Sequence record: OR805293.1
Strand: one strand, 5' to 3'
Length of the DNA: 64,000 nt
Shown in pieces: positions 5,928 to 39,279 of the stretch. The translations under genes and the position numbers were made by a program. How positions within the stretch are numbered: position 1 is the stretch's first letter; the number at the start of each line of letters is the position of its first letter. The notes beneath the pieces are model-generated. The model saw nothing but the letters and a program-made list of their open reading frames with translations. It was not told the origin of the DNA and searched no databases.

Positions 5928-6770
5928 ATGAATACAAAAATTGTAGTTAATTATATTAATAATAAAGAAATGTTAAAGGAAATACATCGTAGTAAAAATT
6001 CATTCTGCGAATATATTTCCCCAAAGTATAAAGATTACGATATTATCTTTACTTCAAAAGAAGACTGTCTGAAACAAGAAAATATAAACGCAGCAATACT
6101 TAAACGAGCAGAGCGTTTAACTCAAGTACAGATAGATGAATATGCATTAAGAACAAATACTAGTTCTAAAAAAGCAAAAGCATCTATAACCCAAGTAGAT
6201 CCTGCAACAATAAATAAACATGATGTTGTTTTTCGTGTTATCACATACGAACATATTCCAGAAGATCATGATAGGAAAAAGACAAAAAAATCAATTAAAG
6301 ACTATCATGTTAAGTTAAATTTTACTCCTTTTAAGCATTTTATTATAGACGAAAATAATAACTTAGTAGAAGTAGGCAGAAGTCACAGCAAAAAAGGAGA
6401 GTTTTGCTTAACTGGAGGATCTATATCAGATAGATTAGCAAAAATGTTTATGTTGTTAATTGACAAATTCGGTCAAAAAAGCAACTGGCGTGGATATTCA
6501 TATCTAGATGAAATGAAGGGACAAGCTTTACTTCAGTTAGCGTCTATGGGGTTGCAATTCGACGAACATTTAAGCGATAATCCCTTTGCATATTACACTT
6601 CGTCTATAAACAATTCTTTTACTAGGGTATTCAACATAGAAAAACGTAATCAAATAATCAGGGACGATTTATTACAAAATATGGGACAAAATCCTAGCCT
6701 TACTAGACAATTAGAACACGATGAGCAAATTCGGTTGCTCAGAGAATTAAATGATTCTAAAGATGATTAA
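5928..6770 (+). CDS. gp55: Late transcription sigma factor (gp55-like), long N-terminal extension
   Basis: YINNKEML at N-terminus; NWRGYSYLDEMKGQALLQL...NPFAYYTSSINNSF motif; adjacent to gp47/gp46 as in T4-like phages. Confidence 0.85.
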   Translation: MNTKIVVNYINNKEMLKEIHRSKNSFCEYISPKYKDYDIIFTSKEDCLKQENINAAILKRAERLTQVQIDEYALRTNTSSKKAKASITQVDPATINKHDVVFRVITYEHIPEDHDRKKTKKSIKDYHVKLNFTPFKHFIIDENNNLVEVGRSHSKKGEFCLTGGSISDRLAKMFMLLIDKFGQKSNWRGYSYLDEMKGQALLQLASMGLQFDEHLSDNPFAYYTSSINNSFTRVFNIEKRNQIIRDDLLQNMGQNPSLTRQLEHDEQIRLLRELNDSKDD

Positions 6771-10313: not shown

Positions 10314-10811
10314 TTATTTACTCAGCTGTTTTACTTTCTCTTTATTCTCTTCTGTCCAGAAATTATTCCAGCTACAGAATACCCAACCCTTGTAATCTAT
10401 ACTATTATTTACTTTAATCCCGGTTTTTTCTTCAAATACTACCCATTTGCCTTGCCGCGTTATTTTTATAAAAATAATATTAAAATCACCTTCGCTAGCA
10501 GTATCACGTACCTGTGATATCCATGTATCTAATTGTTTGCACTCCCCCTCGAACAACGAAGTAAATGAAAATTTTGCATACGATTTACATTCAGAATTAA
10601 AATGTTCCCATGTATCTGGAGGGAAAATATCACCTTTATAGGATTTGATTTGATTATTGCCTAGTGATGTTTTTCTGACAGAATTTTGTCCTCCTATAAA
10701 GGCACCTGAATGTGCTGTTCTAGTAAAGGGTTCGTTGTAAAATGAGGTAAGATCTTTTGCTACATCTCGTTCCCAGCTACTACCTTTAATTTTACTTTTC
10801 GATCCAGACAT
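10314..10811 (-). CDS. Holliday junction resolvase-like PD-(D/E)XK nuclease
   Basis: SKIKGSSWERDVAKDL...GDIF...ECKSY pattern of Hjc-like phage resolvases. Confidence 0.8.
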   Translation of the reverse strand: MSGSKSKIKGSSWERDVAKDLTSFYNEPFTRTAHSGAFIGGQNSVRKTSLGNNQIKSYKGDIFPPDTWEHFNSECKSYAKFSFTSLFEGECKQLDTWISQVRDTASEGDFNIIFIKITRQGKWVVFEEKTGIKVNNSIDYKGWVFCSWNNFWTEENKEKVKQLSK

Positions 10812-10885
10812 GTTTTGTTAACCTTTTATATACCTGTTAAATTTTACATTATTTAGTTAATTTTATACCCATATAATACTGTCGA

Positions 10886-10893
10886 GATAAATA
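10886..10893 (+). promoter_or_regulatory. Putative late promoter GATAAATA
   Basis: Octamer points into the ORF-free structured region. Confidence 0.55.
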
Positions 10894-10942
10894 TGTGTGT
10901 AGATAACTTATAGCATTATTTTTAACGATTTTAGTACAATGG

Positions 10943-10971
10943 TTGACAGTATTAATATCGTATGCTATAAT
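10943..10971 (+). promoter_or_regulatory. Consensus sigma70 promoter with extended -10
   Basis: TTGACA-17 nt-TATAAT with TG at -15/-14; no ORF downstream for 1.35 kb. Confidence 0.9.
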
Positions 10972-10977
10972 CCGCAA

Positions 10978-11883
10978 CATAATAAAACTAAAGGGCGTAT
11001 GTAACAAAACAGACGTTCTCCTAAGTGTTTTAAAGTTTTTGCTTAGGAAGACCCAGTTGTATGTTTAAAGGGTGAACGGTAACGGGCATTCTTGTTTAAG
11101 ACTAGTTCTTATGAAGACATTGGCAACTAACATAGCAGCTTTGTTCCATCATTGGATATTGGTAGTAGAAACTATCCCCATCGTGCCTTTACTGTAGTAC
11201 CGTTAGAGACGGAGATAACGCAGGAAAAAAGGTTATTTAAATTATGATTTTGGGTGCTGCAGAACACTTTCGTAAACAAAAGGAATATAGTTTACGTATA
11301 CACAACGGGAACGGGAAAAAGCTTTTTAAGCAAAAACGAGTCCCTGGTAATTGGTGTTTAACGGGAGTGACGTCCCAAATGTTATTCATTGATTAACACT
11401 GTAAGAAGGTTGTAAGGGTTATTGTGTTCGAAGTGGTTTACACAACTGTTCTTCCTACATTTATGTACAGAAGTGTAAACGAAAGGATGTTGCTCTGGTA
11501 GAAAAAGATCAACGTACTTTATGACACTATCCTTGTGACATATGTACTTGTACCAACAACAGCCGCAGGTTACGGATATGGTATTACAAACTGTACTGCG
11601 GTTCCGGGAGTTGAAAGTGGATGTTAGCTTAGGTGGCTGTTTGCTTAATTATAATGTTTAATTTAGGCAATATAAGCGTCGGGTGAGGCTTTCGTAGGTT
11701 GCGTGTTTATGCTACGGTGTAAATGGGCTAGACTACTGGCGCATACATGAGTATTGTAGGATTGGCGCTTTAATAAAGAAATTTGTTAAAGTTTGAGTTT
11801 AGCTCCCCGCTCATTAGCAATAAACGTTGCTAGTCGATAGTATACCCACGCCTAAATAATGCCGTCATTGTTTAGTTTTTTTT
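10978..11883 (+). ncRNA. Candidate large (~900 nt) structured non-coding RNA
   Basis: Promoter and terminator bound an ORF-free, GC-elevated region with many helices, G-U pairs favouring the + strand and a terminal helix 10993-10998/11848-11853. Confidence 0.7.
11855..11883 (+). terminator. Putative terminator of the ncRNA
   Basis: AAATAATG-CCGT-CATTGTTT stem then AG and T8. Confidence 0.5.
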
Positions 11884-11888
11884 AAAAA

Positions 11889-12173
11889 ATATAATTGTCA
11901 ATTATATGTCGTACGCATCTACCCCGAAAAGGGGTAGATGTTTATGACTTTCGTTTACACTCATGTCATAATCAGTACACGCCATTTTAGGCCATTCTAC
12001 ATCAATACACTGCTTCTAGCAGTGTATTGGACATACAAAATAATCTTAAATTATATCAAATTTGTTTAATTACTTTAATTTTGTTACTTTAGTAACTTGT
12101 ATTTTGTTTATATGAGTTGTAGTTTACGAAAACGAATATAAACAAAATACATATGTGAACTGTAGTTCACATA
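11889..12173. repeat. Cluster of perfect inverted repeats
   Basis: Stems 11889-96/11900-07 (8 bp), 11916-25/11931-40 (10), 12003-13/12019-29 (11), 12098-113/12136-151 (16), 12152-60/12165-73 (9). Confidence 0.85.
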
Positions 12174-12285
12174 CTTACTAACGTTGTATATTACGGTAAT
12201 TCTATAAAATATCTCTATATAATTATAAACGTTTTATGGCATACTACGACTGAACGAAATTGAAAATTAACTAGAGATTTAATTA

Positions 12286-12293
12286 GATAAATA
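12286..12293 (+). promoter_or_regulatory. Putative late promoter GATAAATA
   Basis: Octamer 33 nt upstream of ORF 12326. Confidence 0.6.
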
Positions 12294-12325
12294 ATATTGT
12301 AAAAATTGTATAGAGGTATACATCA

Positions 12326-12778
12326 ATGAACGATTACACACATTACACAGAGGAAGATTTCATATTTTTAGCATATGATTTAAATACTCAGCTTATAAAT
12401 GATGGATATCCTGACGCTGCTGTAAAATTTATTACTAATCAGTTTATTTTAGAGCATAGACATCCTGACGAAATAAAACGTTGTATAGGATGTAATTCTA
12501 AAATGTACGAAGATGTTATTGCTACTAAGAGAAATTTATCTGGTAAATCGCATTGCAGACATTGCGAATCGAAACTTAGTATGTATAAGGAAGTTGTTAA
12601 GGAAGTAGCAAATACAACACAAATACTTCGCATACCAGAAAAACATTTAAATTCAGTTAAACGATTAATTAGAATATATAATGAGCAAAACAAAACTAGT
12701 GCATATCAGAGTATATTAGTTAAAACAAAGAAACTTAACACAGGAGTTTCTAAAAAGTCAAAAAGAAAGGGACGTTAA
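12326..12778 (+). CDS. Hypothetical protein with CxxC...CxxC zinc ribbon and basic tail
   Basis: RBS GAGGT; CIGC and CRHC pairs; K/R-rich C-terminus. Confidence 0.75.
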   Translation: MNDYTHYTEEDFIFLAYDLNTQLINDGYPDAAVKFITNQFILEHRHPDEIKRCIGCNSKMYEDVIATKRNLSGKSHCRHCESKLSMYKEVVKEVANTTQILRIPEKHLNSVKRLIRIYNEQNKTSAYQSILVKTKKLNTGVSKKSKRKGR

Positions 12779-12794: not shown

Positions 12795-13014
12795 ATAGGA
12801 AGCTTCTACCTGTTTCTGCTTCGATTTTTTGTTTAATAAATTCTCCTAACCGTACCCGCTCTTGATATGATAAAGACCAAGCAGTGTGCCAGTCAAATCC
12901 ATTAATTTTATCACATATTTGGACTATTTCGCCTTCTAATCCCAGTGATTCTTGTTCATATTCTTGTATAACGTTCCTAATATCATCTGGGGTTCCCGAT
13001 ACTAGGATTCTCTG
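12793..13014 (-). CDS. gp51/gpT-like tail-assembly chaperone segment, probably expressed by -1 frameshift from the upstream ORF
   Basis: 73-codon frame QRILVSG...FDWHTAWSLSYQERVRLGEFIKQKIEAETGRSFL* with no ATG/GTG/TTG start; overlaps end of gp26-like ORF in the -1 frame. Confidence 0.75.
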   Translation of the reverse strand, partial: QRILVSGTPDDIRNVIQEYEQESLGLEGEIVQICDKINGFDWHTAWSLSYQERVRLGEFIKQKIEAETGRSFL

Positions 13015-13020
13015 AAAAAA
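12975..13020 (-). promoter_or_regulatory. Programmed -1 ribosomal frameshift signal
   Basis: U UUU UUC heptamer (13020-13014), 6-nt spacer, 10-bp stem UCCUAGUAUC/GAUAUUAGGA (13007-12975). Confidence 0.75.
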
Positions 13021-13856
13021 CTTACTGGGTTAAAATCTACAGGTACTACAAAACTTTTATTACAGTTGTCGCATACTGCATCAAAGTCGCCATTAACTCC
13101 TACTTGATTTATTTCTTTTAAAAGACTATCTATTTTATTAACATCTGCTCTATCTATATTTGCTATAAATTCTTTTATATCAGCCAGTGTCTGAGGAGTA
13201 TTATTAACTATATCTATACCGTTAGTTTCATCTACAATACGAACTATTGTTTTTGCAATTAATTCGAAATTTAATGATGACAGTTCATTTATTGTGTTAG
13301 AAAATGCAGAAAGTTTTTCTTCATCTGAATACATATCGCTTTGCATTATTCTAATAAATTTTGCTTGTTCTAATGCAGTTTTTGCAACTGTCATATTATC
13401 TGAAAAATCATATGGTCTAATAAATATAGATAGACCGTTATCGAGGTTCACGACGTATTGATCTTCTAAATAAGTGGACGTATTAATAACATTTAATAAG
13501 TCTATTCCATATAAATTTTTATGATTACAATGCGGGCACGTAGAAGAAATATCTATTGTGTTACCGTATGATGCTGCTTTTATAGCAACACATATCATAT
13601 GAATGTCATTAATTAAGAGTTTATTTACATCTTTAATTCCCGGTACACAACTCTTAATTACTTCTTTTAAGCCTTCACCGTTCACTAATGCATCAGGATT
13701 TTTTATTAATACTTCATCTTTTCCTGTCATAGCATATACCCCTAGTTCTCCGGAATCGGTGTATTCTACAACATTTGATGGATAAAATGAATTTCCGCTG
13801 GGCAAACGAATATAAGATTTGAATGTTCTGTAATATTGATGTAATTTGTTGCTCAT
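13002..13856 (-). CDS. gp26: Baseplate hub / tail assembly chaperone (T4 gp26-like)
   Basis: IRLPSG..FY, MTGKDEVLIK, STCPHCNH and AVCDNCNK zinc motifs, terminal FF; divergent from tape measure. Confidence 0.75.
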   Translation of the reverse strand: MSNKLHQYYRTFKSYIRLPSGNSFYPSNVVEYTDSGELGVYAMTGKDEVLIKNPDALVNGEGLKEVIKSCVPGIKDVNKLLINDIHMICVAIKAASYGNTIDISSTCPHCNHKNLYGIDLLNVINTSTYLEDQYVVNLDNGLSIFIRPYDFSDNMTVAKTALEQAKFIRIMQSDMYSDEEKLSAFSNTINELSSLNFELIAKTIVRIVDETNGIDIVNNTPQTLADIKEFIANIDRADVNKIDSLLKEINQVGVNGDFDAVCDNCNKSFVVPVDFNPVSFFRES

Positions 13857-13875: not shown

Positions 13876-13903
13876 GATAAATATGCTATATACCGTATTT
13901 ATC
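13876..13903. promoter_or_regulatory. Face-to-face pair of late promoters
   Basis: GATAAATA on + (13876-83) and on - (13896-903), 12 nt apart. Confidence 0.7.
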
Positions 13904-38068: not shown

Positions 38069-38092
38069 GACAATGCTCAATATTCTTTATGA

Positions 38093-38100
38093 TATTTATC
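38093..38100 (-). promoter_or_regulatory. Putative late promoter GATAAATA
   Basis: 25 nt upstream of the fibre operon. Confidence 0.7.
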
Positions 38101-38175
38101 ATAGTAATTTTAGGTAAATTTATGAAATTATATTTATTTTCTTTTATAAAACATAAAATATAGTTGTTTAATTTA

Positions 38176-38459
38176 ACTGGGTGTAATATAATTTGTAGTG
38201 TATGCAATACATTTGCATATATACCAAGCACTGTATGGTGAGTTGCATACAGCGATGGGCAATCGTAGTGCCGACATTGATCTAGTATGATCTGAAATAG
38301 GTCCCTTACGCCGAGGTAAGGCTATCTGGCACGGATAGTAGTGGATGTGTATGTTCGAAATAACGATATCATATTTTAGACATACGCCGCCGTCAGCATT
38401 TTTAGTTTGCAACTGCTGATATCTTTAAGTTTTGTTGATGGCCGGGGGTGGTGCCCAGT
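38176..38459 (+). ncRNA. Candidate ~285-nt multi-hairpin non-coding RNA
   Basis: GC-elevated island with six hairpins closed by ACUGGGUGU/GUGCCCAGU; wobble pairs favour + strand. Confidence 0.6.
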
Positions 38460-38663
38460 GCATTTTTATTATAGAGTTATTGTGTAAAAGAAATAAATGT
38501 GATTAAAGACGAGGTTCTTTTCTAAAACTGTTTCTAAAAATAATTGCGTTAAAACCTTGGGTTTAGTTAATGCATTATATATGCTATATAATTATCCCTA
38601 CATAAACATGTATGTTTAACTTGTTTAGTTAACAACAAAATATGCAAATTAAGGAATTAACTG

Positions 38664-38831
38664 ATGACTAAATTTAATAAAAAATCGTTAGATACGTATG
38701 AAGATAGAGAAGATTATAGAGATGAAGAAACCGGTGACAGGTTAAATAATAAGAAATCTGAACCTAAAAAAAATAATACTGATTATAAGCCGTTTGGTAA
38801 AATTACCAACCGCTATAATAATGATAATTAA
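38664..38831 (+). CDS. Small charged hypothetical protein (55 aa), not in ORF track
   Basis: AAGGAA RBS; MTKFNKKSLDTYEDREDY...NRYNNDN*. Confidence 0.6.
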   Translation: MTKFNKKSLDTYEDREDYRDEETGDRLNNKKSEPKKNNTDYKPFGKITNRYNNDN

Positions 38832-38859
38832 ATAGTAAATATTATTATCATTTACTACG

Positions 38860-39279
38860 GTGATAATAATGATAGAAACTATTTTAACTTCGAGAGTATT
38901 TGCTTATGTAGTTTGCATAGGTATAATATCGTTAGCAATAACGCTCTCATATCAAAAATATCAAAAGCTTATTAGTGTAAATAAATCTCTTGAACAATCT
39001 ATAGAAACGTTAACTAATGATAATAATTCATTGCAGTTAACTATTTCTGAACAAAATAAAAAGATTGAAACATATATTCAACTTAGATTATATGAAGAAT
39101 CTATAGCCAAACAAAAAGCAGAATCACATGCTGCTTTAGAAAAACAATTACAAGATACTAAATCTCAGTTAAATGAATTAATAGAACGTAGAAAGAATGA
39201 GGCACCAAATGATCAAAGTGTGTTATGCTCTACTGTCAGGATTGATCCTGCTTTACGCAACTGGATGCTCGCAAACTAA
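38860..39279 (+). CDS. Inner-membrane spanin (Rz-like)
   Basis: N-terminal TM helix then coiled coil; overlaps downstream lipoprotein gene. Confidence 0.75.
   Translation: MIIMIETILTSRVFAYVVCIGIISLAITLSYQKYQKLISVNKSLEQSIETLTNDNNSLQLTISEQNKKIETYIQLRLYEESIAKQKAESHAALEKQLQDTKSQLNELIERRKNEAPNDQSVLCSTVRIDPALRNWMLAN

Follow-up and report, generated by a model that had tools for sequence, protein, structure and literature searches.

The stretch analyzed here, 64,000 nucleotides of sequence record OR805293.1 (hereafter, the window), is the final 64 kb of Pseudomonas phage Deifobo, a PA5oct-like Wroclawvirus; the PA5oct-type phages form the genus Wroclawvirus and are jumbo phages of 285-288 kb. Between a resolvase gene and a zinc-ribbon gene, the window contains a 1.5-kb gap (10812-12325) for which an original prediction, made from the letters of the window, had claimed a large structured non-coding RNA and no open reading frame (ORF) of 60 aa or more. 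Here, we report that the longest ORF in the gap, all frames considered, is 52 aa and that the gap very probably holds a structured non-coding RNA gene: independent homologues show covariation in its helices and conserve none of its ORFs, and a paralogue has been called a long non-coding RNA (lncRNA) from RNA sequencing (RNA-seq). In a DNA search of the phage collection, this 1.5-kb region was 100% identical to Deifobo and 99.2-99.9% identical to ten other PA5oct-type records. The transcription unit and the hairpins that follow it are listed below.

10886-10893, + strand: GATAAATA octamer, putative T4-late-type promoter, ~50 nt upstream of the -35 box
10943-10971, + strand: sigma-70 promoter TTGACA-17-TG-n-TATAAT with extended -10, score 12/12
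10978-11883, + strand: structured non-coding RNA, predicted primary transcript of ~906 nt, to the first terminator
11852-61/11866-75, with U8 at 11876-83, + strand: intrinsic terminator T1, 10-bp A/U-rich stem with one G-U pair, loop CCGU
11910-11946, + strand: second, GC-rich tetraloop hairpin CAUCUACCCC-GAAAA-GGGGUAGAUG, -22.5 kcal/mol, z = -6.0
12098-12151, + strand: downstream stem-loop, 16-bp A/T stem, conserved loop GAGUUGUAGUUUACGAAAACGA, -18.5 kcal/mol, z = -5.7

Transcription signals and gene neighborhood

At the sequence level, the element is an independent transcription unit, with a promoter and a terminator on the same strand that are both conserved in homologues (related loci are referred to by L numbers). 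The sigma-70 site that had been claimed is the only perfect one within 2.5 kb, and sites of the same kind precede the homologous RNAs of L046 (TTGACA-17-TATACT), L049 (TTGACA-17-TATAGT), L054 (TTGATA-17-TATAAT), and L083 (TTGACA-17-TATAAT). At the other end, the anticipated hairpin followed by eight T residues is present as T1, which has a folding energy of -7.6 kcal/mol on the + strand compared with -4.7 kcal/mol on the - strand. The U-run is 7 or 8 long among sister genomes, and the homologues likewise end in hairpin-plus-U-run terminators. A GC-rich hairpin follows at the same position in L046, L049, L051, L054, and L083. The RNA is, as noted from the outset, richer in GC (38.5%) than the spacer (26.7%) or the whole window (32.8%), and it has a G>C skew of +0.19.

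The octamer at 10886, proposed earlier as a late promoter, is also kept upstream of the RNA in L046, L049, and L051, and it recurs 27-54 nt ahead of many gene starts in the window. Because the octamer is recurrent and a gp55-type late sigma factor gene lies in the window (5928-6770, adjoining gp47; phrog_12791, E = 7.6e-82), a T4-style late promoter at 10886 is plausible, and GATAAATA is likely to be the late promoter of this phage. Only sigma-70-like promoters were described in the PA5oct paper (PMC7318152). Further GATAAATA sites occur, e.g., at 12286, 13876, 25438, 53761, and 58216 on the + strand and at 13903, 32019, 38100, and 45068 on the - strand.

The genes around the gap, in local order, are as follows.

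gp47/SbcD, + strand: first in the local order
gp46/SbcC, + strand: after gp47/SbcD
virion protein gene, - strand: between gp46/SbcC and the resolvase
10314-10811, - strand: PDDEXK-type Holliday-junction resolvase
12326-12778, + strand: zinc-ribbon protein, 150 aa, CxxC...CxxC, after the 1.5-kb gap
13002-13856, - strand: gp26-type baseplate hub
798-aa structural protein gene, + strand: beyond the baseplate hub

Variation among seven PA5oct-type genomes shows the RNA to be under purifying selection inside the species group, with 0.88 variable sites per 100 nt compared with 2.2-4.7 in most flanking genes; the least variable gene nearby is the zinc-ribbon gene (0.44). Between T1 and the downstream stem-loop lies a perfect 12-bp hairpin (12003-12029) whose loop triplet, TCT at 12015-12017, is AGA in two sister genomes. 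The loop is thus in effect inverted, as would be expected from recombination within an inverted repeat.

Homologues of the RNA

The DNA search of the phage collection returned only sister genomes with at least 99% identity. Since these were too alike and direct DNA searches were otherwise empty, resolvase proteins served as the search route. The first relatives reached through the resolvase, in IMG/VR, gave no nhmmer similarity to the window RNA, and their interval contains a structured RNA of another kind. Through resolvase homologues with 53-70% identity in a large protein collection, we reached Logan and ENA contigs, in which the ORF-free neighboring regions match the window RNA: L046, L047, and L048 with an nhmmer E value of 2e-22 over 740 nt, L049 and L050 with E = 7e-4, and L051 with E = 0.02. 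L054, from IMG/VR, was added through a motif scan. Altogether, the element is common to five diverged metagenomic homologues and one PA5oct paralogue (see below). The homologues share a layout consisting of a sigma-70-like promoter, 700-1,000 nt without conserved ORFs, a hairpin-plus-U-run terminator, and a GC-rich tetraloop hairpin, and in four of the five the hub gene lies within ~2 kb of the RNA, L051 being located elsewhere.

Pattern scans extended this set little. A scan of viral contigs with the most widely conserved block of the RNA (block B, below) gave no matches, and a stricter pattern matched a single viral contig, L054, and none of 185,579 bacterial and archaeal species genomes. 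The 20 matches of a core pattern in JGI metagenomes were all rejected as chance hits in unrelated, mostly GC-rich sequence.

Conservation of the fold

The structural elements considered below, all on the + strand, are as follows.

10992-98/11013-19: P1 hairpin, from the local fold, pairing kept in L046
11020-27/11040-47: P2 hairpin, double changes keep pairing in L046
11135-11260: core junction, comprising H0, a variable hairpin (11145-56), H1, H2, a variable hairpin H3, and the invariant strand UUAAAUUAUGAUUUUGGGUG
11135-39/11256-60: H0, enclosing the remaining core elements
11161-66/11171-76: H1, within the core junction
11177-80/11251-54: H2, within the core junction
11436-11480: hairpin GUUUACAC...GUGUAAAC, directly before block B
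11482-11508: block B, AAAGGAUGUUGCUCUGGUAGAAAAAGA, the most widely conserved sequence block
11553-11602: CCAACAACAG, then a hairpin (11562-68/11596-602) with a conserved 27-nt loop

Decisive evidence comes from the comparison of relatives. In a structure-blind MAFFT alignment of window positions 11125-11275 with four homologues, in which three helices were scored, 96% of cells were paired over the five sequences, compared with 27-52% when the partners were slid by 1-3 columns, and the covariation score was reached by none of 500 shuffles. H0 and H2 were 100% paired, with five of their nine pairs varying on both sides. H0 reads GCAGC/GCUGC in the window and GCUGC/GCAGC, GUAGC/GCUAC, GUGAC/GUCAC, and GCGAC/GUCGC in the others (three of five pairs doubly changed), and H2 changes from CCCA/UGGG in the window to CACG/CGUG in L046. 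When the PA5oct paralogue was added as a sixth sequence, 96.7% of cells were paired; over both alignments, the range with slid partners was 27-53%. The helices maintained by compensatory substitutions include this core, a five-way junction (H0, H1, H2, and two variable hairpins) around invariant single strands.

An E-INS-i global alignment of five full-length RNAs was usable in the core only. In a pairwise alignment of 660 columns, the consensus fold of the window and L046 reached -74 kcal/mol compared with -33 ± 5 for column shuffles (alifold z = -7.6), and the covariation that had been suggested as a check on relatives of this interval was found, with 35 compensatory pairs against 14.2 ± 4.0 in shuffles (shuffle maximum, 25). 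In P1, four of five pairs are altered on both sides in L046 with pairing kept. The hairpin at 11436-11480 has a counterpart at the same place, with a different stem sequence, in L046 and L049. Block B was found in L046, L049, L051, L054, and the PA5oct paralogue and at 25 of 27 positions in L083. The stem at 11562-68/11596-602 has three of seven pairs doubly changed between the window and L046, and the CAACAG-plus-hairpin arrangement also occurs in L051, L054, and L083.

The helices drawn by the original prediction survive in part: 11020-27/11040-47, 11271-77/11290-96, 11436-43/11473-80, and 11563-68/11596-601 are borne out by compensatory change, but 11483-88/11529-34 has no counterpart in L046. 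A helix said to join the ends of the RNA (10993-98/11848-53) is contradicted, because seven PA5oct-type genomes carry A at 10995 in six cases (G in the window) and at 10994 in three, and these residues break the helix while P1 gains A-U pairs; in P1, the natural variants G10994A and G10995A each turn a G-U into an A-U pair. As a whole, the RNA reaches a minimum free energy of -245 kcal/mol on the + strand, 60 kcal/mol below the -185 kcal/mol of the - strand.

A paralogue with RNA-seq support in PA5oct

This locus is not the only one with such an RNA: its family has two or more copies in this phage. RNA-seq of PA5oct defined four "putative lncRNAs," none of them at the window locus (Lood et al. 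2020, PMC7318152). One of these, ncRNA004 (MK797984 246116-246734, 619 nt as annotated), is a discrete non-coding transcript with low expression, at 0.02-0.08% of phage reads (PMC7318152). It matches the window RNA with an nhmmer E value of 3e-21 and 84% identity over the core, a stretch of only 120 nt, and a covariance model of the core (R1) trained without ncRNA004 scores it at 94.2 bits (E = 1.6e-22). The R1 match begins 26 nt past the RNA-seq-defined 5' end. Its H0 is a sixth compensatory variant, GUGGC/GCCAC, and its H3 stems are compensated too. Judged from sequence and predicted pairing, ncRNA004 is a true paralogue of the window RNA.

Like the window RNA, ncRNA004 has the core junction, block B, and the downstream stem-loop. 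In contrast to it, ncRNA004 is shorter, lacks the ~150-nt 5' domain and a consensus sigma-70 promoter, and lies at a different locus. In the PA5oct paper, no structure, conservation, or family was given for ncRNA004, and the hub-adjacent copy was not annotated as RNA (PMC7318152). The other three, ncRNA001, 002, and 003, have no similarity to the window RNA family. Positions 38076-38876 of the window are 98.8% identical to ncRNA003 (MK797984 103065-103668, a "putative lncRNA" from RNA-seq) with its flanks; the sequence is unrelated to the RNA described here.

The stem-loop downstream of the RNA also goes with the family. Window positions 12109-12140 (32 nt) are identical downstream of ncRNA004, and the loop GAG(Y)GNAGTTTACGAARCGA recurs with different, covarying stems past the RNA in L083, L076, L078, and L080. 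Copies elsewhere lie at L102 ~975-1030, L083 ~7215-7165 (- strand), and L076 ~8200-8150 (- strand). The stem-loop could be a protein-binding site, a processing site, or a DNA element.

Absence from known RNA families

A search of the window against Rfam 15 at gathering thresholds gave no matches, the families including GOLLD, ROOL, OLE, HEARO, raiA, RNase P, tmRNA, 6S, and group I/II introns; in a permissive search, the top sub-threshold match reached 22.9 bits against a cut-off of 55. The same search with 24 related loci also gave none, and ARAGORN found no tRNA or tmRNA in the 64-kb window. Searches of the literature yielded no account of a conserved RNA in the corresponding interval of PA5oct-, GAP32-, 121Q-, or RaK2-type phages. 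Because no catalogued RNA family matches, as the original prediction had suspected, the RNA represents a new class.

Structured elements in the same interval of other jumbo phages

In three further groups of phages, the interval between the hub and the resolvase or gp46 holds an ORF-free, conserved, structured element. These elements, with second copies in the cultured phages, are located as follows.

L003 6555-7277, L006 5670-6426, L007 and L044 6530-7260: first further group, ~530 nt, between resolvase and hub, uncultivated relatives
L076-L082: second further group, structured ORF-free element in the interval
L091 6044-6847 (GAP32), L093 4544-5329 (CBB), L094 4544-5346 (Serratia BF): cultured-phage RNA
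L096 4541-5223 (Munch), L097 4538-5351 (Turkey5), L098 5469-6260 and L099 2380-2942 (XaC1): cultured-phage RNA
L104 2402-3013 (121Q), L105 2446-3089 (BF): cultured-phage RNA

In the L003 group, the consensus fold has an alifold z of -12.3, with 22 covarying pairs compared with 5.9 ± 2.9 in shuffles; the nucleotides of the element are more conserved than the flanking genes, and it has no Rfam match. The third group consists of the cultured phages GAP32, CBB, Serratia BF, Erwinia pEa_SNUABM_47, Salmonella Munch, E. coli Turkey5 (121Q-like), and Xanthomonas XaC1, whose 680-810 nt between the hub and endonuclease VII carry either no annotation or mini-ORFs. Across genera, these gaps have 67-77% identity, and those of the two Mimasvirus species GAP32 and CBB have 92.6%. 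Their fold has a z of -10.9, with 35 covarying pairs compared with 7.5 ± 3.6. As in the window family, an extended -10 promoter, a U-run terminator, and a CAUxCCCC...GGGGxAUG hairpin are present, and the hairpin that follows T1 in the window has the counterpart UCAUUCCCC-UGC-GGGGGGAUGA. By BLAST, the cultured-group RNA occurs in 62-70 phage records, at 3-5 places per genome, with a single short match in RaK2-type Klebsiella phages, and at most matches the annotation is empty or limited to hypothetical mini-ORFs. The RNA measures ~0.6-0.8 kb, and one of its copies always sits between the hub and endonuclease VII; XaC1, 121Q, and BF have a second one in another ORF-free gap, which in XaC1 is 2.2 kb from tRNA-Ser.

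No direct similarity was detected between the window family and the three further groups: model R1 detected neither L083 nor the L003, L076, or cultured-phage groups, and a model of the cultured-phage 3' domain (R2) did not detect the window RNA. Because both searches were negative, the link between the groups rests on two bridging loci and synteny. (i) L083 has 25 of the 27 nt of block B together with the 5' motif of the L076 group (E = 2e-8). (ii) L005 has the window-family core H1-CCCCAUUG...GAUCUUGGG, with 14 nt identical to L049 and a compensated H1 stem, and it also has the cultured-group 3' domain (R2, 26.6 bits, E = 2e-3 over 369 kb). The family is probably part of a superfamily that extends across a whole jumbo-phage lineage; that all groups form a single mosaic superfamily appears probable and is not proven.

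Two further observations concern protein genes of these phages. The SbcC-like gp46 in L007 (3187-5238), L044 (3055-5103), and L017 (6862-9141) aligns with the window protein as two separate segments, ~80 residues being absent in between, which suggests an insertion (intein or mobile element) or a split gene, and the portal protein of L082 carries an intein domain.

Explanations for the interval

The best explanation for the interval, and one we consider likely, is an independent ~0.9-kb structured non-coding RNA gene whose product, rather than being an mRNA, a leader, or an antisense transcript, acts in trans as a folded RNA. Several points weigh against it. Folding of the single sequence is weak compared with shuffles, and because its z-score is only -1.9, lone-sequence folding is not taken as evidence. 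The core is supported by six independent sequences, a number that limits formal covariation statistics, and the 3' third (~11620-11850), with the hairpins 11769-90 and 11815-32, is not alignable with relatives. The PA5oct study puts its four non-coding RNAs elsewhere and four tiny coding sequences (CDSs) here, which would be odd for a very abundant RNA from a perfect promoter. The high abundance and the expression throughout infection that the original prediction named are putative. Homology between the window family and the cultured group depends on one bridging locus and synteny, with no direct match. Lastly, the function of the RNA is wholly inferred.

The main rival, which we regard as improbable, is a replication-origin module in which the strongly promoted, G-rich transcript would be a structured primer or form an R-loop, similar to ColE1 RNA II or T4 oriF(uvsY)/oriG, and the A/T-rich spacer with the stem-loop at 12098-12151 would be the unwinding or initiation site. 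T4 has several replication origins, and its oriF lies within about 1-2 kb of gene 26. An origin would be consistent with a sigma-70 promoter that host polymerase could use at time zero, with the G>C skew of the RNA followed by a hairpin-rich spacer of 26.7% GC, with the duplication of the RNA and downstream stem-loop as a module in PA5oct and the 3-5 matching places per genome in relatives, and with the adjoining gp46/47 recombination and resolvase genes. However, two tandem terminators separate the RNA from the spacer, the cumulative GC skew has no extremum at the locus, and the G-skew is not kept (0.02-0.10 in the cultured-phage group). ORFs or converging genes come directly after the RNA in L046, L054, L083, and the other groups, and the second copies in 121Q and Serratia BF sit inside co-directional gene arrays. 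Known R-loop origins also do not need 600-900 nt of covarying structure. Origin transcripts and the window RNA do share a promoter-driven non-coding transcript beside an A/T-rich region, and ColE1 RNA II is itself structured (~550 nt) with a fold that matters; the window RNA differs in having terminators before the A/T-rich region, no GC-skew switch, an arrangement that is not kept in relatives, and no identified hybrid-forming G/C tract.

Less probable still is a selfish or mobile RNA of ancient origin, for instance an intron-like element that has degenerated or a guide-like one of the kind associated with transposons, multiplied in jumbo phages without a phage function. It would account for the several copies per genome, the constant placement within ORF-free gaps, and the conserved terminal stem-loop that goes with the copies, but there is no match to an intron, ribozyme, or transposon-RNA family, and no endonuclease, transposase, or reverse transcriptase gene travels alongside. 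The hub-adjacent copy is syntenic across genera and groups, the paralogues are old (~65-70% identity in XaC1; 84% over only 120 nt in PA5oct), there is little variation inside the species group, and none of the 185,579 bacterial and archaeal species genomes gave a match.

It is very doubtful that the RNA is a cis-acting leader or attenuator of the zinc-ribbon gene. Although this gene is co-oriented and downstream, with a homologue after the RNA in L046 too, two terminators and 440 nt separate it from the RNA, and it has its own GATAAATA 40 nt upstream; the genes that come next in L054, L083, and the other groups run toward the RNA, and ncRNA004 has no such gene directly downstream.

Least credible of all are several micro-proteins, as given in GenBank for PA5oct, Deifobo, Cassandra, and PAC2: some records annotate 4-8 CDSs of 31-52 aa (four in PA5oct) and conservation extends to a seven-codon start, M-I-L-G-A/V, preceded by AGG, but other annotators call nothing in the interval, each ORF is broken in L046 (all ten small window ORFs contain stops or non-3n indels there), the ORF from the conserved AUG at 11244 stops after 7-50 codons (50, 25, 7, 14, and 12 in five homologues) and has UUG for AUG in L054, tblastx scores are alike in all six frames, and conservation tracks base-pairing, not codons. 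Protein-coding genes were rejected on the grounds that no reading frame is conserved in relatives.

Possible mode of action and comparison with known RNAs

For the non-coding RNA gene itself, the following course of events can be proposed. Host RNA polymerase with sigma-70 would transcribe the RNA from the first minutes of infection, and the gp55-type sigma factor would add late transcription. The invariant unpaired strands (UUAAAAUAUGAUCUUGGGUG, block B, and the CAACAG region) would be its working surfaces, which may serve to contact a partner protein or to assemble tertiary or quaternary RNA architecture like that of GOLLD and ROOL; this is the mechanism we hold most likely, and the odds that the RNA acts in trans as a ribonucleoprotein (RNP) or architectural RNA appear to be about even. 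The position between the recombination genes (gp46/47 and resolvase) and the baseplate-hub/portal block would be a weak pointer to late DNA processing or virion morphogenesis, and a specific role of this kind is speculative. The zinc-ribbon protein (12326-12778), a homologue of which (43% identity) also follows the RNA in L046, is a candidate partner.

Like GOLLD and ROOL, which are 0.5-0.9 kb long and form cages by cryo-EM (bioRxiv 10.1101/2024.12.08.627333), the window RNA is phage-borne, has many covarying helices, and is its own transcription unit. At more than 500 nt and with many covariation-backed helices, it qualifies as an ornate RNA. However, the GOLLD and ROOL covariance models do not match it even at E values up to 10, and these RNAs usually lie beside tRNA genes, of which the window has none (only the XaC1 paralogue of the related group is near tRNA-Ser). 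Therefore, the window RNA is placed outside GOLLD and ROOL; it also differs in its Gram-negative jumbo-phage hosts and its synteny with baseplate and recombination genes. As an analogy only, phi29 pRNA is likewise a phage-encoded structured RNA, for virion morphogenesis, located near structural genes and preceded by a host-type early promoter. It is 174 nt long compared with ~900 nt and has no sequence or structure similarity to the window RNA. To our knowledge, T4-type packaging motors do not use RNA.

Implications

The window RNA is a new large structured phage RNA family whose sole documented relative is ncRNA004. Its recognition corrects the annotation of at least eleven PA5oct-type genomes and ties a published RNA-seq "lncRNA" to a conserved structure. 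Large, elaborately folded RNAs are rare in bacteria and phages (rRNA, RNase P, group I/II introns, OLE, GOLLD, ROOL, and raiA), and each discovery has opened new biochemistry. The RNA described here is absent from Rfam, has a fixed place in a structural and recombination gene block, and recurs several times within a genome. Dozens of cultured, tractable jumbo phages, including phages of E. coli K-12, have it or its probable relatives, so the function of this new large RNA class is directly testable. More tentatively, the hub-adjacent elements may be one ancient superfamily of 0.5-1 kb RNAs that is universal in the RaK2/121Q/GAP32/PA5oct lineage as a functional core component, i.e., an RNA with a catalytic, architectural (cage or scaffold), or RNP function that genome processing or virion assembly would require. 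If so, a universal core RNA would have a role without counterpart in T4-type phage biology.

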